64,000 bases of DNA, from the NCBI RefSeq assembly GCF_000150275.1, contig NW_002060943.1, positions 5,352,008 to 5,416,007 on the forward strand, given 5' to 3'. Both the position numbers and the translations under genes were made by a program. Of this stretch, positions 1 to 24,678 are shown in pieces (the first letter of the stretch is position 1; each line of letters begins with the position of its first letter). The notes beneath the pieces were generated by a model. The model was given only the letters and a program-made list of their open reading frames with translations, ran no database searches and had not been told where the DNA came from. The stretch comes from Trichoplax adhaerens (Eukaryota; Animalia; Placozoa).

Positions 1-929
1 CTACAAAAATTTATATTAGGAATTTATTTATCAACCATCATTAATGTGAACAAGCTAATAGGTAATTACGTGTTTTACTACTACAATTAAAATTATAATT
101 AATTATCATTGGGACTAGCCTAATACTGGGATATTAATTAAGTGTAATTAAGTATCAGCAGTAGATTAAGAATGCAGTACAGTAATGGCTCAAAAGTAGG
201 CTGTGGGGTGGTTTATATCAATTATAACCAAATATGATGCAAAGTTTTGGCTCCATGAATTGATATAGTAATCATTTTAAACGTTATATAGGAGTTTACG
301 TAATAATAACTCAAGAATGAGCCATTAGCTTAAGAGGAGAATTAGACAATCCAAGAATTTATGAATAGTTATACTCTAGGCTTTGTTATAAGTGAAGTTT
401 CTTCGAACTTATTCTGTTGCTAGTAGATAGATTATGCCATAACTTATGAATAGCTTTACACTCAGATAGGACGAGTAGATGATTGCGATTAGTTAACGCT
501 TGCAATCTACTGCTTGATCGTATGATCCGTTTGAAGAATTTGCTTAATGATAGCCTAGTAATGAAAGAAACGACTTTAAGCTAATATTAAAAGCGTTCAG
601 ACTACCCATACTAGAGTCCTAAAATCATGTTCTGCTTCACAGTATAACGAAAAGTCTCCCTGTAATGATGATTACATTGGTAAGGCTCTATAAATATAGC
701 TAATCTATTTTTTCTGACATGAAGATGTAATACCATGATTTAATATAGCTCATAGGCATACATCTATCATGGTATTTCCATTTCAATAGTATCTTCTATC
801 CAGCTAGGCATTCATTGCTCTATCTAATGGAGTTTTAGCATGGTTAGTTGTTTTTGCATGTCGGGAATCATGATTGTTGTATCGTCAAGTTTAATCAAGC
901 TTACTGTTATTGTGATCTACTGTAATAGG

Positions 930-1190
930 ATGATTTATTACAGCATTAAAATAAGAAGTTCACGCTATGAGGTCTACTCTTATTAGGCCGATTTGATGTT
1001 GTCTAGGCTTCAAAATAACGTTAACAATATGCCATTTGGATATAAAGCTTGCTATTATAACAATGTGATAAGGAGATGATTTATTATAGCATTAAAATAA
1101 GAAGAAATTTATACCATGAGGTCTATTTTTATTCCGAAGACTTAAATGTTGTTTATCTTGTCGCTGTTTCGAGAGTAACGTAGATATTAT
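930..1190. repeat. Decayed two-copy tandem duplication (period ~146 bp)
   Basis: atgatttatta(c/t)agcattaaaataagaag...atgaggtcta occurs at ~930 and ~1076. Confidence 0.7.
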
Positions 1191-3491
1191 ATATTTAAAA
1201 AATGATGAATCATATAACTACGTTATTAATAGATTTTAGATTTATTCAGCGACTTATTGAATGTAAATTCCAATGAAATTACCTCTTGCCAGCAGGCAAC
1301 ATTCATGTGGTTTATGGATATTTGTCGGGATCAAGATAAATCAATAACTTATATCGCTCTTTATTAAAGAAATACTAAAATTACGCATAATTGCATGATT
1401 TTGGCTGTTTTTCTATCTGTAAAGATGATATTTTATGTAAAAAGATGTAATTATCTGACTGTATTATGGCATAAATTTAAATAAATGAGTATATGCCCAA
1501 TTAGAATATAGGGTTATAACGGAACAGTATAAAAAAGATCGACACGATTTTTGCTCTGCTCAATAATACTTGCAAGGAACAAATTGTCCAGTCTTTGATC
1601 GGATAACGAGTAAAAAGTAATTCCAAAATTATCGGCGCTTACTTTTGTAAATTATTTGTATCTTGCCTTAGGCTACAAATAGTAAAATTGTGTTATTTAT
1701 ATCTTTACTTTGTATTCAATTCCTACGGATATTTTAAGAATCGCTGCCTTACTCACTCATTAAAAAATAACGACGTGATGGAATGAGAACTTTACATCGT
1801 AATTAACAGAAATATGACAAGGATCCACTTCTGAATCTCTTAAGCTCATGCAAAACCTATTATGCTAGTATAAGTTTTTGGTAGAATACTCGCTTTCTAT
1901 TTTCCATGCCATTATAATTATCTGTTCTAACTAATCAGAGATTAATATTCGTAAAGTAAAGAATGGTTATTGCTAAAACTACTAGATGAATAATATACAA
2001 GAACAAGGCCCAAATTTATATGGGCAATATTCAAGAACCAGATCCTACTTTACAGTTTGAGACACTGTCAGTTTTTGACTGCATTATTTGTACCATAGAT
2101 AGATAGTGTTGCTGATTCTGGCCCATGAATCATTAAATTGTGCTACTGTAAGTGCTATGCAAATATTAGATCGAATTTTAATACAAATTGTTTTAATTCC
2201 AGAGTTATAATCACCTTGATAGTAATCTGACTTAATAGTATTGTAGATATGGCTTACGGTACATAATATGAAGCTTGCCGATGGAATCTTATAAGACTAT
2301 AATAGAATTTACTGCTGTAGAGTAACTTTAAATTAGTAATATTATCCTTAGAAATATGTGCTAACTGTATTTTTTGATGATAAATAGATTATTAATTCGT
2401 TGGGTTATAATAAAAATAACACGCTAAGAAGAATACATAAGGTTATAAACTGTTTTTTGCCTTCAAAATTTGATTTGCATTACTTTTACATAAAATTGAA
2501 ATAATTTAGGGGAATAGGTACGGTACTGTGCTACATCTGATAATTTTCGCAAGTATCGAGCTTGCTCCGACCAATCATTTTTCTCTTATTTATGAATAAT
2601 TCCGTCGCCGATCATGTTAAAAATAAAAGGATACTCAATATGGAATAAAAGAAATATTCTGACTTTATTGATATATTAGGTAGAACAAGTGAATATAAAA
2701 ATAACACATTTACAGCTTGCACATATTACAAGTGGTAAGTTAATGAAATATAGTTTTTAATTACCAATAGACAGTGCATTTAAGTTTATCTGTTAATAAT
2801 TCGTATACCGATTAGCATAATTATATTTATGCATTTATACATATAAATATATTTATAGCGTTAATCCAATAATGCATCAGGATTATGCTACAAAATAAAT
2901 TTTTTAAAAAGTTACAGCATTTTGTGATACAAACAAAGTAAAAAGGGAATTGATAGTAAAAATTAATAAATTGATTACATTTACCATTATTTTCCTTCGT
3001 TAGAAATATAATTTCAATCTCTTGCTATCTGCCTTAAAAATATATTTTAGAAGAAATTATAAACTTTTTTGCTACCATTAATTTCACTTTGAAGCCAAAA
3101 AATATAATGTGAATGTTGACAGTAAGATCGAAAGGAGTATGCTGAGGTACTACAACAGCAATTTAGATAAATTACTGCTCATAGACATCTCTTTATTTTG
3201 GCCGTAGTTAATACAATCGGTAGGCAATCGATTTGGATATGGAAATGTACATCATTGCATAAAATTATAAAACTACGATCTTTTAGCGATATTAACTGGA
3301 AAGTTTCTGTACAATGTTTAAGAACGTTAATCCCTTTAAATTACTACCGTAATAAATGGCATCATTACAGCTAAGATCATGGATACATTAATACAAGTTA
3401 ATTATGTTATAGGAATACCTAACTAGCAATGTACATCAGGTAGAAAGAGTTTTAGACAACATGGGTTCAATCGTAGAATTAATTTTCAGTA

Positions 3492-5295
3492 TTATAAGCA
3501 ACGGCGATTGACTATAGATGGCCCAAATTCTTCATATTCAGCACTAGTTATACACATGCGGCAAAACTTTGGCGAGCTTGCTAATATTGCACCTCCTCGC
3601 CATATTGTATTAATCCTACTACATGGGCTATGTATCCTGATTTTACCACACATTGAAGGTGTTTCAAATTCAATTTCTTCTTTCAGACGCTCTGGTAATC
3701 CCTTAAATTGGCTATTACCACCGGCTAAGACAACATTTTGCATCAATTCTTTCCTAATATCAACATCACATGATGTAATACAACTGGAAATGCTCTTATG
3801 GATGCCGGCCAAATCGAGCCCGACCATAGCTGGACTAAATAAAACTTCTGGACAGCGAAAGCGTTCATTACCAATCTTAATCACCTGGCCATCAGGCAAT
3901 GTATAAGAAGTTTCGACAGATTCTTCGTCAACGGATAAGGTGTCATAATCTAATGTTACAAAGCATAAGTTTTCCTTGATTTCGCGGACTGTTTCCATAT
4001 CAGCATCCGTTGTGAACGAACTTCCCCTATCATTTAATGCCCTTGCCAAAAATTGTGTTAAGTCTTGACCGGCTAAATTTAATCTTTGCACTGCATAATC
4101 TAGGACACAGCCTTCATAGATTGGAACCGAATAGCTCACACCATCGCCACTATCAAAGACCAATCCTAAAAAAATCGAGTTATTAATGGGTGAGTAAATG
4201 TTAGAATGTGAAATCGTCAAGAGTACAAAAATCTATAAATATTGCAAGATATGCTCCCTAGCTAATAAAGCATACATAAATATTGTGATGCTATGACAAA
4301 GTAGGTGCTTAACGAAGATTCTGGCTTATAATCAAGAAATCTATTGCAGCTAGTGTGTGCTAGCCAAATAATTGATACTAAGGAATGTAGCTTATAGATA
4401 TATGCAATATAAATTCTAGACCGATTCCACTAACCTGTTGTCCTTCCACTCTCATATAATGATAATAGCGCTTCAGTTGCAACATAGAGATAGGGCACAT
4501 TAAAATTTTCAAACATGATCTGAGTTATGGTTTCACGGTTTTTCTTAGGGTTCATTGGTGCTTCAGTGATGAGCACTGGATGTTCATTAGCTTCTAATCT
4601 TAATTGGTCTTCAAACATATGCTGCCATAACTAAAATAAAAGGTAGCTGTTACTGTATGCATCTACATATTTATACAAGTAATTAGTCCATAAAATTAAC
4701 ATATTAGGCAAGTAACTTGGGTTGATTGCATTTATACAAGTCTACAGATATCGTCGACGGTAAATAAAAGTACTTACTAATTCCATATCATCCCAGTCTT
4801 TGACAACGCCATGCTCCACGGGATGACTTAAAGTAAGTACATCCCGTTTTTCTTGAGCAGCATCTCCATAATATAACGCACCACCATCATTTGTCAATTG
4901 CTATAATTTTTAATGAAACAATTTTTATCAATATTGATTACTGATAATTAGCACAGCTGATGCAGGAGAATATCATAACTATGGTAACAAAAACGTTTAG
5001 TATCATGATTTTAAGGTCATATTGCGATTCTACCTGCTATTCATTTCAATAATATCGATCGCATACCAATACTAGCTATTTTTTCTCTAATACTTAGCTA
5101 TTTTTCTTTTTCGATTATCATTGTTAAATTTATAATACATGGACAAAACGCCAAATGTATTTATTATACCTTGTATTGAGGCCGGCCAACTATAGAAGGA
5201 AAAATTACGCTGGGATTACTTTCGGTTGCCAAACCAGCTTTTATACTGCTTGAACCATTATCAATAACTATAGGTGTTTTAAAATCATCAAATGT
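3492..5295 (-). CDS. Actin-like domain (4 exons), C-terminal part of the fusion gene
   Basis: Motifs [93 protein letters not shown] and [15 protein letters not shown] cover the whole actin fold. The first actin exon has no Met codon. Confidence 0.92.
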
Positions 5296-8200
5296 CTAAG
5301 ATGTAAAAAGATTTGTATTAAAATTAATTTATGTTTGGGAGAGTAAGGATTCGTGATTTTACCATTTATTCTTGTGGCGAAATTTATATTCACTTACTTC
5401 TGAACTTGGAGACTGAAGAGGTGAGCATTTAACGTGGTCGTCTAAATCCAAACTAAGTTTAGATCTGTTACTAGCTTCATCAGACGTTTCGACAACGGTC
5501 TCGCTTATAGGCTGATCATCTGTTTTAGTAGTGTCTTGATTAGCTGAGGATAGGTTTTCAAGAGTTTCGGCCGTCGTAGATTTAGCAGCCCTTTCGTCTG
5601 CAGTTATTGTTTCGTTGTCGTTGCTTTTAGCTAATTTTGCGGATTCCTGGCTTGTTCTATCATTCACATCTTCTATTGTTGCTGTTTCAGATTGGGCTTG
5701 TGAATTATTTGATCCTTCACTGCTACTACTTCTTGATTTGCTATTTTCTGATGCACTCTCAGGTTTGATATTATTATCTGAGTAGAAGGGTTTATGTCCG
5801 TTATCTTCGCTAGAAGATTCATTACCGGATGCTGTTCCGCTTAAACTTCGCTGCGATGCCGATGATGCTGCTCCGTCTGATGCATCGGTATCCGTGCCAG
5901 TTTGTACTTTTTGATCTACTTCACGAGCATTTTTTGTTGCTGTTTCCATCACTAACTCCTCTGAGCCATTGGTAGCTCTTTTAATGTCTGTTTCCATTTC
6001 GTTTTGCGCCGGATCAGCAGAAATAGATTCCTTACTATTATTGACTACTTCCTTAGATTCGCTAGTAGTAGTTGTATTTTGTTGCGAGTCTGCTACCTTT
6101 ATGACCGCGTTATCATTTTTAGAATTATTCATTACGGTATTTTGATCCTCATATTCGGAAGATATATTTTCTGGGTTTAAAGTAACTTGATCTGAGATTG
6201 ATTTCGATTCGGCCTCGACAGTATCTGATTTTTTAATCGTTATAACTTCCTTATTTACATTTTCAGCATGGAGTGTACGACTATTATCTGTTTTGTCAGT
6301 GCTACTATCTTGTAAGGCTGCATTATCGGTAGATATTTCTTCATTGGACGCTTGGTTCTCTTTTAATTTATCGGAGGACGATTCCACTTCGGCATTAGTA
6401 TCGCTTTGAGGAGTCGATTCCGCATTAGCAACGGATTCAATTGCATTTATCTGTGTATTATTTACTGATTCTTGTTGATGACTTGACGGATCAGTTGCAT
6501 TCTCCCCTTGGCCAGAATCACCGATATTCTCTTGTTCATCCATGGCCATAAGTCTATTTTCTAATTCTTGTGATAATAAAGCAGCTGCTTCTTCTGATTC
6601 ATCAACTGCTGACCGCCTACTTCTTCCTTTAGGTTTGTTGGCTTTAGGAATTTCAATAATTTCTTGATCTGAAGACTCGTCAGCAGGTTCTATATCATTA
6701 GACTGTATGGCATCATCCGTTACTTCTGTACTTGCTTGAGCTAAAGAATTAATTTCAACGGTGTTATTACTACTGCTCTCCTCTGCAACAGATTGCGATT
6801 CACCTTCCTTTCCAGTAAGATGTTGTTCAGATTGATCTTTATTTTCATGATCAGATTGCTTTGCGGTTTCGGGTGTAGAATTATGGACGTCAATACTTGG
6901 AGAGTCTAATTGCTGATCCGCTACCTCTACGGGAGTACTTTTCGATAACGATGAATTACTACTTTCATTTTCATTTGCTATTTGTTTATCAGTTAAGCTT
7001 AACGTTTCACCGGTTATATTCTGCTGTACTTCTGTTATATGAATCTCATTTAAACTACTACTTGCTATATTATCAACCGTTGCGTTTTCAGCGTTTTCAT
7101 CAACTTGATAGTTTTCTTTCACGTTTCTTTTGACTTCTGCTGTTGTTTCTTGCATATTAGAAACAGGCAAAGAGGTGTTGATATTTTCAATTGAGATATC
7201 AGTATTACCATCATTTTGTGTATTAGAATTTGGAAGAAGAGCTACAGCTGATAATTCTATGCTACCAGTGGAGGAAACAGATTCCTTAGTATTTCCTGAC
7301 TGATCATTTATTTGCATTAATTGACCTTGGACAAGGTCTTGATTACTTTTAGCTTGATTGGAAGTAAGTTCTGTAGTTGATTTGATATCAGTGCTAATGC
7401 CACCTTCATGACTGCTTTCATTGGATTTAGATGAGAGTATTCCAGCTTGCTGGAGTTGGTCTGATCTCAGTTGTTCAGCTGATATATTCCTTGGATGCCA
7501 ATTTGTAGACGGTATTGCTGTTGTATTTAAACCAGGGTGTTGTGAAGAGTTGGGCATCATTAATGGGTATCCTGAATATTGCATTTGTCCTGGAAAGTAC
7601 TGTGGAAATGCAGGATTGATATACATGGGATTTTGCCCAGGTGACGGGTAAAAGTTAGCTGGAGGCATCCCTGGCATATAGGTGACATAATTTGGATGTT
7701 GTCCGATCACATTCACTGGCGAAGTGTAAGCAGGATAGCCTCCACCATAGCCTAAAAATTCTGGACTATTAAAATGATGGGGATACATCGCCCGATATTG
7801 GGCATTTGGTATCATTCCTTGCTCAGCAAAATTGGAGTACATCATATTTTGTGGACTGAATTGAGTGAAAATCTCTTGTCCGGCAATGGCACGTCCTACC
7901 GGGGATGATAAATTACTACTGGCAGTTGGAGATACATGTTGTTGTGAATCAAACATCTGAGCATTGGCTCCCATACTTGGGCTTGATATATTGGAAGAAA
8001 TTGTCGAAAAGGAACTTGTTGTAGCGTGTGTACTATTTATTGTTGAGTCATTTGTGGCAACTGCGGTAGTTAAGGAAGCATTTTGAACTACGTGGACTGT
8101 CGAAGTAAGTTCTTCAGGTGTAATTATTTGGCTACTGACTGTAGCACAAACTGCATTGATTGTAGTAGCTGTAGTGGTGACAATTTCATTTTCAACTATC

Positions 8201-11200
8201 TGTATTGATATTTCTTCAGTGTTTTTTTGTTCTGACGGTTTGGCAATGTCATGACTAGTAGTATCGGCTTCTTGATTATCAACATGATCTTTGTTGACAT
8301 GGTGGTCATCATTGGCAGCTCTGCTAATCTCTACCTGAGGTATTTCGATCGATTTATCTTGAATATTCTCTGAAGAAGTATTACCATCTTTTGGGGGATT
8401 CGAATTCTTACTAGAAGTTGCAACAGCTTTATCTTTTACTGGCTCTTCCATCGGAACATTGTTAAAATTGTTGTTTGGGTTAGCATCAATTTTACGAAGA
8501 TTAGCTTCGAAATATAGCCTTTCGTCGGAGGTATCTAGTTGACTAGTTGGTTGATGGCTTACATTATTTCTTGATCGATTCATTCTGTCATCAAGAGTAC
8601 CTGAATAGGCATGATCTGGACTTAATGGACGATTATAAGGTGTCTGAGTTGATCCTTGGTATGGGTACTGAGTATTTTCAGTATAGCTGCTATGGCTGTC
8701 ATGCTTTGGCATTTTAACAATTGGCTTTCGAACAGCTAGTTGGCTAGTTCTATCACTAACGACACTTTTTAGCTCCGCAATATGGTCAGGATTGACCTTA
8801 ACGTTAGAAAATTTACCATAGCGTGAAGCAATGGCTAAATCTGTCGGTGTGGCTTTGAATTGGGATGATGATGCTAGTTGCAGAGATGCAGTTGCAGAAG
8901 AAGCTAATCCCATTTTATCCCTTGTAACATTATTTGTCCTTTGCTGGGTAGATGGAGGTGATGATTGAGAAGTTGTCCTAATTATAACACCTTTAGATGG
9001 TTGCTGATGTAACTGTGTTTGCACGTTAGATGTGCTTTGATTTCTTGGTGGGGATGCTCGCTGAGGAACGGATTTTTGATTCGTTGATGGCGGAGATCTA
9101 TCTTGAGAAACAGGAATGGTGCGAGATTCGTGTACAGCATTTTTTAATATTTCCGTTTCCCGAAAAACTAATGCTCTTTCCTGCATAAGTCTTTTCTCTC
9201 GTTGTTGCTTTAATTGCTCTCGTTTTTGATATAGTTCAGATTCAAGCTTTCGCCGTAATTCATAACATAATTTCTGTTGGTTATTATGTTGTAACTGCTT
9301 AAGATTTTGAGCATCAGCTTGATGTTGTAATGTTTTCAGTCGATTATTTTGTTCTCTCATAATTTGCTGTTCTGTTACTTTAGCCATGCTACGATTCATA
9401 ATTGATCCATTATATCGTGGTGGTATTCCTCCCATAATTGGTAAGGAAGCTGTAGATGATGCATGCCTCAATGACAGTCCAGTATATGGTAATTGTTGAT
9501 AAATAAGACGATTTGATTGCATGCTGCTAGTATCAAATTTACTCATTTTATCCACATTTCCAAATCGGACTGAACTGTATGAAGGAGAATGACGTTGTAA
9601 TAAATCCGGAGTACTTACATACTCGAGGTTTTTCTTCGGTGGTGAATGGCCAACGATCCGCTGTCGAAATCGTTGAGATGATTGACGTAAATTGTTATAA
9701 ATTTTTAGTCCCTTGCCGCTACTTCTATGCTTACGAATATTTGAATCACTGGCAGTCAACTTTTTACCTTGTTTAAGTTTATTATGATGCTTTCGCTTAT
9801 GACCGTGATTGCTCATATCTGCCGGAGGGGATATCGCTTGATCATTGTCTTTGTCATCGAAGTCATCAAATATGTCGATAATACCTTTTTGCTTCATTTT
9901 CTCGCGTACTTCTGACGGAAGTTCAATGGTTGGACTTAAACTTTGTGATTCATCATCAGATTGAGCTGAATTCGACATAAATTTAGGTCTTTTCGTTTCT
10001 TGTGGAGAACGATGGTTTGATGATGAAGAACTATGCTGCTTACTACTAACTTGTGATAAAGGTGATCCTGCCTGGGATATTTTCTGATCTCTTAAAGATC
10101 TGATGGACTTTGAACTACTAACAGTCGGAGTTGGTGATCCTTTCAAGTTTGAATTAGCCGTTGTTGAATTTGGGCCATTCTTAATTCTGCCAATTGGTAA
10201 AGGTCGATATACCATCTGATCATTAACATTTTGCCATCCCCATTCTTCCGCTGCTTTTGGCGATATAACATCAATTGATGAATTTGTGGTAGTATTATCT
10301 TGCGCTGATGGGTTAAGTAGTTGTTCAGTGTCAATCCGATAATCTTTAATGGTATTCAAGGCAGAATTAATAGCCTTCAATTCAGATATAGGATTATCAT
10401 CATGATTAGCTACAAATAAGGTAGAAAACTCATCTTCACTGCTATGTCGATCTGATAATTTGAACTCGTCTTTGGTGGAGGAATAATAACGTTTTTTATC
10501 CATCAAATCTGCTATATTGTGATCAAACCATGACACATTGGATTTATTATTGGGGGATCTAGTTGATTTTCTATTATAAACTTTACTAGCCAAAGGATTG
10601 CCATTTTCGCGATCCTTACGCAAGCGAGATAATCGATGCTGTAATTGTTTAATTTGTTCATCTTGTAAGTGTTGTTTTTGATCTTCTACCTCATGACGTT
10701 GTCTGATATATTTAAGCATTAAATCGTCAGTGTCTGCTGATTCAGTAATATCTGCTTTAGGTATGACATTATCGATAGTAGAGACATGATTAATGACATT
10801 ATGTTGTGATCTCATAATAGAATTTTCATTTGCATCATTAGATTGCCTAAGTGGTGATGAGCTTGCAGGTGGTATTTTTTGGCGATCACCAGAATTTGGG
10901 ATAGAGCGTTGATTTAGATTAGAATTATCCGTAAACCGCTGTCTGTCAGAATGCTGTTGGTTGAAATGTTGTTCATGATCTTCAGTAAATGATGGATATT
11001 CTGTAATATTATCAACAGCGTCATGATATTGATTATTGTGATTGAATTGATTAGGTTGATTATAGATTGGAGGAGGAGAAGGAGAATTGTAATCCATACC
11101 ATTTTGCAAAATTGGGTAATGATTATCTAATTGAGAAGGGCTTGATTGTGTCGAATCAAATATATTAGACATAGAGTCTTCTGGATTAATATCGCTGGTT

Positions 11201-14200
11201 GGACTATACATACGAGAATTGGAATTTTCCATCATTTGTTTTTGAAATTCCATGTGTTGTCGCTGCCTGGGAGATAAGGGTTTATTAACTAGATTATCAA
11301 TGCTGCTTCTATCTGATAAAACTGATCTACTTCGTTGGTCAATATTTCTGAGATCGCGTGCAATAGAGGCGGAATCATCATTTTGGTAAGTTACATAGTC
11401 GAATTTTACCTAAAATTTAACAAAATTAAGTCAAAATATAAAAATATTGGGAATACAGTAATATTTAAGATTAAAGGGTGAATCTAATTTAAGTAACTTA
11501 CATCAAAGTAAGCTGGATTCTTTTGCAATACGCTGGTAGGAATACCTGACGTATATTTAGAGTATAGCTCAATTAATTCTCGAATAGATTGCAATTTATT
11601 AATTAAAACGACGACATCATGTTTGAGTATTGCATCTTGTAGGTAATCAGAACACGCAATGAAGAATTTAAGTTGATCTGGTGACGGTGGAGGTGAACTC
11701 TGAATAAACGATGGGAAACTTGCGTCGAAAGGCAGTACATCAAAGTCGGACTTATTTATTCTCTTAAGATCTGCGGATAACAATGCTGGCGGAATTAACG
11801 ATATTGCTTTCTCATACCACCCTACCAGCTATTTTTCGAAGTAAACAAGATATATCAGTTGATTAGTATAGACTTATTATCTTAATTAATGATTAAGTTA
11901 AATACAATCAATAATCCAATATTTTTATTGATCCTAAACCAATTTCCGTAAGTATGAGATGTAGCTATGAATGGTTGATAATTATTTACAGTATTTAGCT
12001 ATGTTTAAATAATTGATAAATTAAATACATTGTGTTAAGCATTATAAACTACTAACAGATTACTGAAATGATGGCGTAAATTTAGTCTATAAGAGATAAT
12101 TTTAGCTCGTAAAACATGTCGTGAAAGTAAAACATTTCACTCATGAATACTATTTACAGATACTGCCTTAGTTGATGATCCAGTCAAGACGTATTTGGAT
12201 CTAACGATATAACCTGATCTGTAATTGAGAAATATTATTCCTCCAAAATTAGATTCGATAATGATATATCATTTATCGATATTGTATAGTATATCTAGAT
12301 CGTAAATAATTCCTACGCAGTACTCTTTTCAGCTGTCCAGAGTAAGAGTTGTATCATACGATGAACCTTATCGCTAAATCTAATTTGTGCCGGAGGTTAC
12401 ATCTCCTGTGGTATTGTTTTACCGTAATGCAATACGTAGAGAATTAGAAGTGTTAGAATCTGTTTTAACCCATTAGCAGCAGTTGGGTAAATTTTGTAAT
12501 CGTTAATGAAGTAGATTGTATTACAATATGTAAATCCTTATTCCCATTGGTGACGGAAAATAACCTCTACTCAATAGAGTAGTAATTTGATAACATATCG
12601 CAGTGACAGTGAATAAGAACTTACCCGAGTTAATAAATAATAAAAGCTGAATACAGCATTTAAGATCTTTCTTCTGGTGTCTAGTCGGCCTGAAAATTTT
12701 TTAATTACTGAATGGAACTGTTCGCTGAAGTAACCTATATTTTTAGTATCGTAATGTTTATATCCGATCATATCTTCAGCTTCTTGCTGTAGCTTTTCTG
12801 CTTTATCGATTACATTCTATATTATTAGGTAGAAATACGTTAGTGGTGTATAGTCATGAAATCGAATTTAATTAATTAGGCTATATCATTCTTGATGTTA
12901 TCTGATAATTTACCTTAGCGGTAACATAGAATTCGGTTTGAAAATCGTGGCGTAGCTGTTGAGCCATGGACAATGAAGTAGCTACTACTATAGGTGTTTC
13001 GAGGTATGATTCTCCACGGTATTTCAACCAATTCATAATCTGTGGCAGTAAGCATAAATTAAGTAATCTACCGGTAGATTGTAGAGAAGTGAGAGATTAT
13101 ATCGATACACGTATGTTGTATATTACAAAAGACCGAAAAACTTTACTTTACTGTCAATAGTTAAAATTTATCGATATAAAAAAAATTTACATACCTCGTC
13201 AACGCGACTTTGAAAATTTCTTAGATCAAAGCATTGCCTTAACTGCGTTTCTATATCGTTCCATATTGACGTAATCTTTTTGTTAGCATTAACAATTTTA
13301 GTATAACCTTTATCTGCATCTTCTGCTAAATCTTGATAAATAGGTTTAGTTGCGAAAGTCGATAATCCAGGATCAACTTCTGATCTATGAAGCCTCTTTA
13401 AAATGGCGGTTCCATCATTAAGTAGTGATTTTATGTTTATTTCTCTATATAAATTAAAATAAGGAGTAGAAATAAGAGCGTTATTAGAAACGAGCTTGCC
13501 ATCCTTTATTATAAACTAAAATCCAACACTATTCAATGTTGATACTGGGCCATACGTACTTTAAAATGCGAGCGAATTCGGTCCTATATTTCTTAAAGAC
13601 TTCTTCGGCGCCATCCAATGTCGATGGTAGCTCATTTTCTTTCATAGCTTCTAGTTCAGCTATAATTCTAGGTGCTTTACTATTTGTATCTTCACATTGT
13701 TGTATAAATGGTAGAATTATCTAAAGATACACCATGAAGTAGATTAAAGATGTTAATGTAGCGTAAATTGATAGAACTTGATAGATATGATTGACTGCAA
13801 GCTAATTAGATATCTAAAAATAAATAAAATAGCAAGCGAGCCAATGTGGAAATTTACAAATATTGATTAGCTTCGAAATATTGAAGTACTTCGGTAAATT
13901 TTTCATAAATGGAAGAGAACTGACGGTAAAATTATTGATTAATGAAATTGTGTACAATTACTAATGCACCTGCAAGTATCTGACACAAGCTTGATGATCG
14001 TGAACAAGGTATCCACCAAGATCCGAAGTTAACTGACTCGAATCAATTTGAGATTTTAAGTCATGTACTTCGTTCAAGATTTTAATCTACAAGAACAATG
14101 ACAAGTAACAAGGTGATTTTAAATTACAGTAATCAATCTTAAATTAAGGTTTAAAATCCGAAATAGATTTGCCCACTGACTGGTAGAGGTTGTTTAAATT

Positions 14201-15164
14201 TCGATTGTTTGTATCGCGATAGTGCTTTTGATAGACACTTTTGATTCGCTCTACTTCTGGGTTTTATGAGATAAACGACATGGATCAGCCCTGTATATGC
14301 CTGAAAAAATTAGACGGTTGATTTTAACTGTTAGTAATGCAGTGAAATCACAAAATATTTTAAATAATAAAGCGATATTTAAGTCACGGAAAGCTTATTG
14401 TACCTTGATGTTATCGAGAGCATCGAGTGTAAAATTAATGTATTCATATGGAGATGCTGATAAATCTATAATAATAGTATAGCCACGGTGTCGCTGTTCC
14501 ATCCTATATTTAGAAATATCCAAATATATGTTATATGAGTAGGAATTTTAGTTAAACTGATTAAATAGACTAGCGTTAAGTAAGGAGAATTGCTAGTATA
14601 TACGCGTATAATACAATATAATCATCTTATCGATGATTATTTTGAGTTAATGAAATCTCTGATTAATGATGTTTCGAATGAAAACGATAGATAGCTGCAA
14701 TACAGTGCAAATAAATACTGAGAGATAACGATGTTGCATTAAGATTGTGGTAATAACTTTTTACTAAATTAATCTTGTATGAATTACCTAGGTAGACCCA
14801 TCCAGAAGTTAAGTAGTTGGGTCATCTCTAGAGTACTTAAATCGGTTATTCCCGTTCCATGACGTTTAGCAGGCAAGGTAATAATTGGGCCACCTCGTTG
14901 ATCGGTACCACCTTATCGAAAGAATATAGTAGTCAATATATTAGCGTATATATAAACTGTGTTCATTATTCCTTCTACGACCATTTAAAGATACACATAC
15001 CAATTAGCCTGCAATTTATACAGATACTACTACGCTACAGAGCTTGTACCTCCATTAGTCTAATTGTGCAAGAAATTTTTTGCAGTTTACTTATTTTTAC
15101 CTGTTAAGATGGCAGCCTCTGACAGCAACGTATCAGTATTTAGAATGGACGGCTTGGATGGCAT
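3492..15164 (-). CDS. Multi-exon fusion gene: Sec14/CRAL-TRIO domain + spectrin repeats (SESTD1/Trio-like) + ~2000-aa low-complexity region + C-terminal divergent actin domain (~2,903 aa by hand count)
   Basis: Hand-built exons, all GT-AG and phase-consistent: 15164-15101, 14911-14788, 14503-14404, 14300-14181, 14086-13970, 13720-13560, 13444-13195, 13039-12914, 12816-12625, 11828-11502, 11409-5398, 5295-5170, 4900-4778, 4630-4435, 4165-3492. Total 8712 nt with no internal stop. An in-frame TAA (15173-15171) lies just upstream of the ATG. Confidence 0.8.
5398..11409 (-). CDS. Giant 6012-nt exon encoding an S/N/Q/E-rich, largely disordered region with short coiled-coil-like segments
   Basis: Contains ORF 5359..11253 and stays open 52 codons further upstream to the acceptor ttttag at 11410. 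A GAA|GTAAGT donor lies at 5397. Confidence 0.85.
11502..15164 (-). CDS. N-terminal exons of the fusion gene: Sec14-like lipid-binding domain followed by spectrin repeats
   Basis: Translation gives [37 protein letters not shown] and [24 protein letters not shown], hallmarks of the Trio/Kalirin/Dbs/SESTD1 Sec14 domain. It continues with [28 protein letters not shown] and [29 protein letters not shown], which are spectrin-repeat patterns. Confidence 0.85.
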
Positions 15165-23800: not shown

Positions 23801-24678
23801 ATCTTTCACATAAACGCCTTTCTCCGGGTGTTCCTAAATTGTCAAGTAATTGAAAGATAAGATTCTTTCCTTTATTATACCAAACAAGTTATGATATCAT
23901 AAACATTTTTAATGTACGATTATCAAGCTATTTTATGATATAATAGATATTTTAATGGCTGTTTGTTAATTTAATATGTCATATGACATCTAACCTTAAC
24001 TTCTAAATTGTTTTTAACATCTTTGGCTAGTAAATCGCGAATGGTTTCATTATAAATTTCCAGATATGATGCACGTATGAGATATTTTGTTCCTTCAGTA
24101 GTCTGTATTGCTTCGAATATATGATCGAATGCACGTGGTGTAATTCCACGCTGACTCGGGGGATCAGTAACACCTACAAATTTGCGTTATGTAACATAAT
24201 TAATACGTATGCCATTTCATTAAGGTGAGTTGACAAAAAAATTTATTTAACCATAAGCATTAAATGATATTTTATTATAAGATGTAATTTTTTATAGCTA
24301 ACGATGAGTATCGACTAATCAGAATTACAATATTAGACAGGAGTAGACATAAGTTTAAGTTACTGTCAATGTCATACCTTGCATAGTATAAGATTTGCCA
24401 CATCCAGTTTGGCCATAGGCAAAAATCGTTCCGTTATAACCTTCTAAAACACCATCAACAAGTGGATAGGCAATATCATTGTAGATTGTATCAGTAACGG
24501 AATTTATATTATAGACGCCATCGTAAGTAAAACTTTTCGGTGGTTCATCGGCTTTGGGTTTCTTCAGGCGGGCCTGAAAGGTTGATTCGTCCATTTCAAC
24601 TACATTTTCGCAGCGCAAATCAACCTCACGCTGATTAATTGGCCTACATCGAACTATCACTTTAACAGCTTCAGCCAT
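20809..24678 (-). CDS. KIF17: Kinesin-2 family motor KIF17/OSM-3 (8 coding exons, ~848 aa)
   Basis: N-terminus [13 protein letters not shown]; P-loop GQTGCGKS; switch motifs NADSSRSH and DLAGSERQ; [13 protein letters not shown]; neck [11 protein letters not shown]; KIF17-type tail with [12 protein letters not shown] and W..P. Exons 24678-24378, 24173-23995, 23833-23650, 23534-23342, 23244-23000, 22889-22536, 22058-21997, 21837-20809. Confidence 0.93.

Follow-up and report, generated by a model that had tools for sequence, protein, structure and literature searches.

Actin is, to our knowledge, almost never a domain within a larger protein, and the few known cases are young or lineage-restricted. 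Dictyostelium filactin, with its filamin-type Ig repeats, and primate POTE-actin, a POTE/ankyrin protein carrying a retroposed β-actin, are each confined to their lineage and have separate origins; in both, a C-terminal actin fold is attached through the actin N-terminus. Here we describe a locus of Trichoplax adhaerens that shares this arrangement and combines it with a different partner. It lies in a 64,000-nucleotide (nt) stretch of contig NW_002060943.1 (positions 5,352,008 to 5,416,007), called the window throughout and numbered from its first letter. Minus-strand positions 15164-3492 of the window are very probably one protein-coding gene, an orthologue of a chordate family, formed by a fusion older than the placozoan/chordate split. 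Its product is a predicted Sec14-spectrin N-terminal module of ~527 residues, a low-complexity linker of 2,004 residues, and a divergent C-terminal actin of 372 residues. Pfam finds neither filamin-type Ig repeats nor POTE/ankyrin repeats on the window exons or in family members.

The N-terminal module is, judged from its family, of the kind found in the SecSR class of Sec14 proteins (Kalirin, TRIO, MCF2, MCF2L, and SESTD1; PMC9823006), which is defined by an N-terminal CRAL_TRIO_2-type Sec14 domain without CRAL_TRIO_N, followed directly by spectrin-like repeats. The Sec14 domain of Kalirin binds lysophospholipids weakly via a surface groove (PMC9823006). Kalirin and TRIO have the direct succession of Sec14 domain and spectrin-like repeats that is predicted for the placozoan protein, but the placozoan protein and its family have about three repeats, lack the DH-PH RhoGEF, SH3, Ig, and kinase domains, and end in actin. 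SESTD1, a SecSR protein without a RhoGEF domain (PMC9823006), is similar in size to the N-terminal part but stops after its repeats. Connectitin, in which SESTD1, CCDC141, and titin form one ancestral gene, has been reported in placozoans and cnidarians (PMC12198301); it too carries a Sec14-spectrin head on a very long, partly elastic tail and has a cytoskeletal role, but its tail is made of Ig/FN3, RhoGEF, and kinase domains, whereas here a disordered linker leads to actin. The same study lists placozoan trio/kalirin, connectitin, and MCF2-like proteins, and a Sec14-spectrin-actin gene is not among them (PMC12198301).

The original prediction, made from the letters of the window, had joined scattered open reading frames (ORFs) into a single open coding sequence (CDS) of 15 exons and 2,903 residues, with a 102-nt phase-0 intron as the key junction. 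Reading by eye and by script bears out both. In the following feature list, profile positions refer to a profile built from eight family proteins, E is the expectation value, and RNA joints are those described below.

15101..15164, minus strand: exon 1; start ATG at 15164-15162, with an in-frame TAA nine bases upstream; profile 14-32, weak
14788..14911, minus strand: exon 2, start of the predicted Sec14 domain (CRAL_TRIO_2-type); blastp match to residues 38-74 of amphioxus P0044, E 1e-5; profile 36-71, E 5e-6
14404..14503, minus strand: exon 3, predicted Sec14; profile 80-108, collinear, alone not significant
14181..14300, minus strand: exon 4, predicted Sec14; profile 115-143, E 3e-5; collinear blastp match
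13970..14086, minus strand: exon 5, end of predicted Sec14, with the conserved motif ..QLT.DLGGY..H; 57-60% identity to shark and amphioxus members, E 1e-10; profile 154-189, E 8e-15
13560..13720, minus strand: exon 6, first helix of the spectrin-like region; profile 194-241, E 4e-5
13195..13444, minus strand: exon 7, spectrin-like region; profile 245-321, E 3e-7; blastp E 1e-5
12914..13039, minus strand: exon 8, spectrin-like region; profile 328-369, E 6e-5
12625..12816, minus strand: exon 9, spectrin-like region; profile 373-434, E 2e-6; weak Pfam Spectrin match
11502..11828, minus strand: exon 10, end of the helical region; profile 475-526, E 0.013; donor GTAAGT at 11501
5398..11409, minus strand: exon 11, linker; 6,012 nt, 2,004 codons; open from its acceptor, with TAG directly upstream
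5296..5397, minus strand: phase-0 intron at the fusion junction, 102 nt long; donor GTAAGT and acceptor ..cttag; protein ..SPSSE| at the joint
5170..5295, minus strand: actin exon A1, actin residues ~1-41; Pfam Actin 1.4e-8; without Met; joint in RNA
4778..4900, minus strand: actin exon A2, residues 42-84; Pfam Actin 1.1e-5; joints 5170|4900 and 4778|4630 in RNA
4435..4630, minus strand: actin exon A3, residues 85-150; Pfam Actin 6e-18; joints in RNA
3492..4165, minus strand: actin exon A4, residues 150-375, stop TAA at 3494-3492; Pfam Actin 5.5e-62
2748..3491, minus strand: probable 3' untranslated region, lower end approximate; the X5, X6, and X9 RNA contigs extend 552 nt beyond 3300, ~740 nt past the stop

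All introns read GT..AG and have compatible phases, and the joined CDS (8,712 nt, or 2,903 codons plus the stop) contains no internal stop; it was used for the length and stop check alone, and database searches ran exon by exon. Exon A1 has no Met, as predicted, and an in-frame TAG stands directly upstream of its acceptor besides. A chance ORF is rejected for the giant exon, since 2,004 codons cannot stay open by chance in DNA of ~37% G+C.

The fusion of linker and actin is seen in RNA. Assembled contigs were aligned to the minus strand of window positions 3300-9299, and in each of runs X5, X6, and X9 (the last a recorded RNA-seq library), which come from three separate studies, a single contig holds all four joints, 5398|5295, 5170|4900, 4778|4630, and 4435|4165; the skipped part reads GT..AG on the minus strand every time. 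Each joint-bearing contig extends into the giant exon, and that of X6, 8,232 nt long, is unbroken over 5398-9299. The sole joint into 5295 in these runs comes from 5398, and no contig ends at 5295. The original prediction had named this splice, along with 11502/11409, as one to look for in RNA; it is present in three studies, with the actin introns removed too. Run X1, whose RNA label is a guess, covers the introns of the same stretch, has no joints, carries adapter at its contig ends, and looks like genomic DNA. Since the spliced form is missing from this DNA-like run, it is not a genomic retrocopy, and a processed pseudogene is rejected; an assembly artefact is rejected as well.

These contigs bear directly on the alternative that the locus comprises two neighboring genes, one Sec14-spectrin-linker and one actin-like, joined by an occasional read-through (conjoined) transcript, with actin made from its own promoter and start codon. 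The contigs do not reveal transcript starts or levels, and echinoderm homologues of the N-terminal part without actin could be cited in its favor. Yet the first actin exon lacks a Met and has a stop directly upstream, only 5398 joins 5295 in three studies, the contigs are unbroken there, and the same architecture with the same junction intron occurs in amphioxus and a teleost, all of which make this explanation highly improbable. Even harder to credit is that the region is decaying or mis-assembled and its long frame functionless: no homologue of the linker was found and linker variants look neutral (see below), but 2,004 codons stay open in AT-rich DNA, the one indel polymorphism (6 nt at 8282) is in frame, spliced RNA comes from three studies, and all five actin-exon variants are synonymous among the variants listed.

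The predicted order of parts in one fused gene, from Sec14 through a spectrin-like region and a linker of about 2,000 residues to actin, is supported, for the N-terminal part by mapping onto the family. Judged from homology, this part has the SecSR layout of Kalirin, Trio, and SESTD1, in which a Sec14 domain precedes spectrin-like helical repeats, here about three. Exons 2-5 fall on positions 36-189 of the family profile, and family members themselves match Pfam CRAL_TRIO_2 with up to 34.6 bits. Exons 6-10 are collinear with the spectrin-like region of the amphioxus member, their own Pfam signal being weak and limited to exon 9. The N-terminal part of the amphioxus protein matches the crystal structure of the Kalirin Sec14 domain (7ur2) by sequence (E 1.8e-9), and Kalirins are the next sequence matches after the family itself. 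The structure and complex predictions reported here are those of amphioxus and fish members, not of the placozoan protein. In the AlphaFold model of the amphioxus member, an α/β domain (residues 25-170) precedes long helices (185-546) predicted at a pLDDT (predicted local distance difference test score) of 80-90, with disorder beyond. Foldseek ranks 7ur2 first for this model (template modeling score, TM, 0.65-0.68) and matches its helices to repeats of β2- and α-spectrin with probabilities of 0.92-1.0. As for the RhoGEF module that continues other SecSR proteins, no Pfam family was found on the 1,964-residue ORF spanning most of the giant exon, and no PF00621 was found in family members.

The family came to light through a phmmer search with exon A4, which returned many proteins of 1,000-1,900 residues with actin at the extreme C-terminus; in the long matches, Pfam finds CRAL_TRIO_2 N-terminally and Actin C-terminally, and the N-terminal part is common to 29 of the top 150 matches. 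Its members, with 1,200-1,900 residues, are labelled 'uncharacterized protein LOC...' and occur in Branchiostoma (e.g., XP_078668912.1), the shark Scyliorhinus (XP_072355897.1), the caecilian Rhinatrema (XP_029451311.1; many isoforms), Polyodon, Erpetoichthys (XP_051781236.1), Amia, and many teleosts. In the ESM Atlas, CRAL_TRIO_2 and Actin also occur together in two clusters of 'hypothetical' proteins, one with 77 members and one with 62. The family appears distinct from SESTD1, as judged by separate fish 'LOC...' entries that NCBI does not name sestd1, not by sequence.

Three lines of comparison tie the placozoan gene to this family, with which it shares the order of parts. First, all 14 non-linker exons are collinear on the family profile, exons 1-10 at positions 14-526 (best N-terminal E 8e-15) and A1-A4 at 1292-1660, and blastp of single exons against family members likewise gives collinear matches. 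Second, exon structure is shared: the junction intron and the actin introns at 41/42, 84/85, and G150 (phase 1) are common to the placozoan and amphioxus genes, and the junction intron and the 41/42 intron are found in Danionella too. The exon that follows the junction measures 42 codons in the placozoan gene, against 41 in amphioxus and about 43 in Danionella, and in each begins in phase 0 and ends in ..GRP.Y(K/E)|gt. Third, the placozoan actin shares the derived residues H40Y and L110M with chordate modules, and T303N and E241T with vertebrate members only. The placozoan gene being an orthologue of the chordate family, the fusion predates the placozoan/chordate split.

Echinoderms hold homologues of the N-terminal part that are 1,363-1,395 residues long (P0177 of the sea urchin Diadema and P0197 and P0198 of the crinoids Anneissia and Antedon) and have a long tail, in which Pfam finds no actin domain. 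Exon 5 matches the Diadema locus (E 4e-9), and at this locus of Diadema setosum (L003) there is no actin exon within 10 kb downstream; the echinoderm actin has either been lost or moved further away. Sequence comparison thus argues for one ancient fusion, predating the placozoan/chordate split and later lost or split in echinoderms. The fusion has apparently been lost in amniotes, judging solely from their being missing from the match lists. A word-index search with the family alignment gave six matches among 8,000 candidates scored and is not informative on cnidarians, sponges, or protostomes.

Several observations weigh against reading the locus as a single ancient Sec14-spectrin-actin gene. 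Pfam searches with the nine short N-terminal exons singly gave nothing useful beyond the weak Spectrin match of exon 9 (E 0.035), and a six-frame scan of the whole genome for CRAL_TRIO_2 (PF13716) left the locus unmatched at a cut-off as loose as E 10, so that it is by collinearity with its homologues in the family that this gene is assigned a Sec14 domain. Exons 1-10 and the 11502|11409 joint lie outside the stretch to which RNA was aligned and are proposed from sequence and homology. Because the contigs do not show where transcripts start, a minor actin-only or linker-actin isoform may arise from an internal promoter, and the fused protein is known here from DNA and RNA, not at the protein level. 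In trees built on the A4 region alone, the chordate fused actins form a supported clade (98/83), which the placozoan actin, on a long branch, joins in 13% of bootstrap trees in the free maximum-likelihood analysis. On the side of orthology, a tree that holds all fused actins together has a log-likelihood 4.4 above that of the free tree and is not rejected (approximately unbiased test, p-AU 0.555).

Other N-extended or repeated actins turned up in the same searches. P0092, P0107, and P0097 (~800 residues, an N-terminal extension plus actin) fell near the family in a quick tree and were set aside as single-ORF metagenome proteins with unrelated N-terminal parts. The metagenome ORFs L004 (3906-6299) and L005 (10001-12379), which encode P0092 and P0107, have an extension of ~425 residues without a Pfam match followed by a full actin, and the three proteins are probably another class of N-extended actins, from microbial eukaryotes. 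Many matches of 490-660 residues were rejected as conventional actins within mis-joined gene models. P0152 (Branchiostoma belcheri KAI8485631.1, 2,969 residues) joins a Sec14...actin protein to retrotransposon Pol (RVT_1, RNase H, and aspartyl protease), and this model is probably an annotation chimera. The best phmmer matches to A4, P0001 and P0159 of Entomortierella chlamydospora (608 and 1,227 residues; 'Actin-1'/'Centractin'), contain two actin-like stretches, perhaps actin folds in tandem, perhaps the outcome of gene models having been merged.

The actin module is complete. Its four exons match positions 5-39, 45-80, 84-144, and 144-409 of the 410 in the Pfam Actin profile (PF00022), covering all four subdomains; exon A2 by itself scores 24.6 bits, just below the 27-bit cut-off. 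The genome also has four conventional actin loci, and the fused copy is 54% identical to the conventional actin of the same genome. Two of the conventional genes, L001 (G000:C1414:4321700-4323600) and L002 (G000:C1404:1826900-1828700), have one intron, at codon 84/85, where the fused actin also has one of its introns; this agrees with a published Trichoplax actin intron position (PMC12146513). By the marks of a conventional actin (Q137, H161, a canonical D-loop, and very high identity) the fused protein is not one, and it falls outside the conventional clade in trees. It carries Q137E, H161Y, G15S, Y169C, P172D, and K336I and a D-loop two residues shorter. Except for H161Y, which recurs in two chordate members, these changes set the placozoan copy apart from the chordate family, whose members keep Q137 and mostly H161 and have a charged hydrophobic plug and a changed adenine pocket. 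At phosphate-binding and catalytic positions, identity with conventional actin is 94% in the chordate consensus and 75% here; over all positions it is 55% and 53%, respectively. No surface has changed more than the D-loop, where 15% of positions are like conventional actin in the chordate consensus and 0% here. The altered surfaces are themselves conserved among chordates, where 67-83% of rows share the commonest residue.

Variation among strains, taken from the runs against the window, separates actin from linker. These counts are among the variants listed, and ten further variants exist. The actin exons have five synonymous and no non-synonymous variants, which points to strong constraint on the actin sequence. 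The linker exon has 11 synonymous and 20 non-synonymous ones, close to neutrality, under which 8.8 of the 31 would be synonymous (P = 0.24). The single indel seen, an insertion of CATGAT at window 8282 in the X9 contig, adds 6 nt in frame: the linker tolerates length change yet stays in frame. Residues S, N, Q, and T abound in the linker (14.5% S, 9.2% N, and 7.5% Q, compared with 0.3% for W plus C), which has a basic first half and an acidic second half. It has no Pfam match, and neither the family profile nor word-index searches found a homologue; with the 1,964-residue ORF as query, the word index gave no match among proteins of 1,080-3,437 residues. In chordate members, a linker of about 560-900 residues, without detectable similarity, takes the place of the 2,004 residues found here. 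Given the near-neutral variants and the in-frame indel, only the openness and character of the linker seem constrained.

A near-neutral linker is also what an expendable spacer would look like, as in a precursor from which the actin module is cleaved after translation to act as a free divergent actin, with the N-terminal part and linker serving delivery or regulation. We regard this as very unlikely: no protease site or processing motif was found, and an exon of 6 kb kept open together with an N-terminal part conserved from placozoans to fishes speaks for a working full-length protein.

How the fusion arose is suggested by its junction, which lies within two codons of the normal actin start and so makes an origin by splicing from an upstream SecSR gene plausible; a donor in that gene was probably spliced to an acceptor just ahead of the start codon of a downstream actin gene. 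As to function, the original prediction had suggested, for example, a membrane-anchored filament nucleator, cap, or decoy, readings for which the predicted complex described below is the one, weak, hint. We tentatively propose that the protein tethers actin filaments to membranes, anchored at its one end and docked on the filament by its actin module. The Sec14-spectrin end would sit on the membrane or a cortical scaffold, the long disordered linker would act as a flexible tether, and the actin module, still binding nucleotide, would dock on conventional actin as a terminal or incorporated subunit. It would add to a filament end without propagating it, and so work as an anchor or a cap, not as a polymer in its own right. 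In conventional actin, the N-terminus is exposed on the outside of the filament; the D-loop reaches into the adjacent subunit on the pointed-end side. A tether at the N-terminus is thus sterically allowed, and the D-loop being the most altered surface favors a subunit that adds to, and does not propagate, the filament.

The predicted complex of a conventional fish actin with the bichir fused-actin module is consistent with docking. It scores 0.44, a value rated weak (≤0.60), and the best control scores 0.00; three runs gave 0.42-0.47, with partner pLDDT of at least 85 and contact agreement of at least 96%. Of 78 solved complexes, 51 attain the mark for this score, as do 2 of 108 mismatched pairs. 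Two considerations count against docking in this form: the score, obtained with fish proteins, may reflect memory of solved actin-actin structures, and Q137E, H161Y, G15S, Y169C, P172D, and K336I, the short D-loop, and the charged chordate plug make canonical polymerization doubtful.

The same changes would suit a fused pseudo-actin that never enters filaments. It could serve (i) as a platform or decoy for G-actin binders (profilin, cofilin, WH2, or DNase-I-like proteins) or (ii) as a nucleotide-dependent switch, in either case concentrating such partners at the Sec14-spectrin site. Its contact surfaces are remodeled (a D-loop 0-15% like that of conventional actin, a charged plug in chordates, and a changed cleft and W-loop in the placozoan copy), Q137E and H161Y argue against normal polymerization-coupled ATP hydrolysis, and conservation of the altered surfaces in chordates (67-83%) suggests a specific partner. 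On the other hand, the module retains its phosphate-binding core and many of the residues that make longitudinal contacts, a free ..KCF-type C-terminus and attachment at the N-terminus are what a filament subunit needs, and there is the weak predicted contact with conventional actin. We see this as a possibility, though a doubtful one. A broader version of the filament-docking proposal is possible too, although we would not bet on it, namely, that a 'tethered actin protomer', in which a long entropic linker ties an actin subunit covalently to a lipid-binding Sec14-spectrin scaffold, existed before the placozoan/bilaterian split, that it seeds, caps, or anchors a filament end at the membrane, and that it was kept in fishes and lancelets and lost in amniotes.

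Around the gene, the upstream neighbor lies on the same strand, with ORF 24355-24678 (-) matching the start of the Pfam Kinesin motor domain (E 2.2e-25). Window positions 1-3400 hold no ORF of at least 50 residues except a TTG-initiated one of 58 residues on the plus strand (3198-3374), and plus-strand ORFs within the locus are short and without support.

A full-text literature search, with most subscription journals outside its coverage, found no description of a Sec14-spectrin-actin protein. Of the novelty that the original prediction had cautiously raised, the absence of a describing paper stands, whereas the architecture is not unique: predicted CRAL_TRIO_2 plus Actin proteins are present in NCBI and UniProt. 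Since the domain pair is visible in public automatic annotation, what is new is that these proteins are recognized as a family, together with the age of this family, the exon structure common to its members, and an RNA-confirmed placozoan member whose linker is 2,000 residues long.

The union of an actin fold with a membrane-scaffold module has persisted, exon structure included, for several hundred million years, being shared by placozoans with sharks, fishes, and a caecilian. It adds a fourth lineage of early-animal Sec14-spectrin proteins beside trio/kalirin, connectitin, and MCF2-like proteins and amounts to a natural experiment on an actin subunit that is unable to diffuse. The family is present in the zebrafish relatives Danionella and Myxocyprinus, open to knock-out and imaging, and the actin module, taken alone, is of a size that standard actin biochemistry can handle. 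If the module does act as a tethered protomer, animals would have a way to attach filaments to membranes without a separate actin-binding domain.

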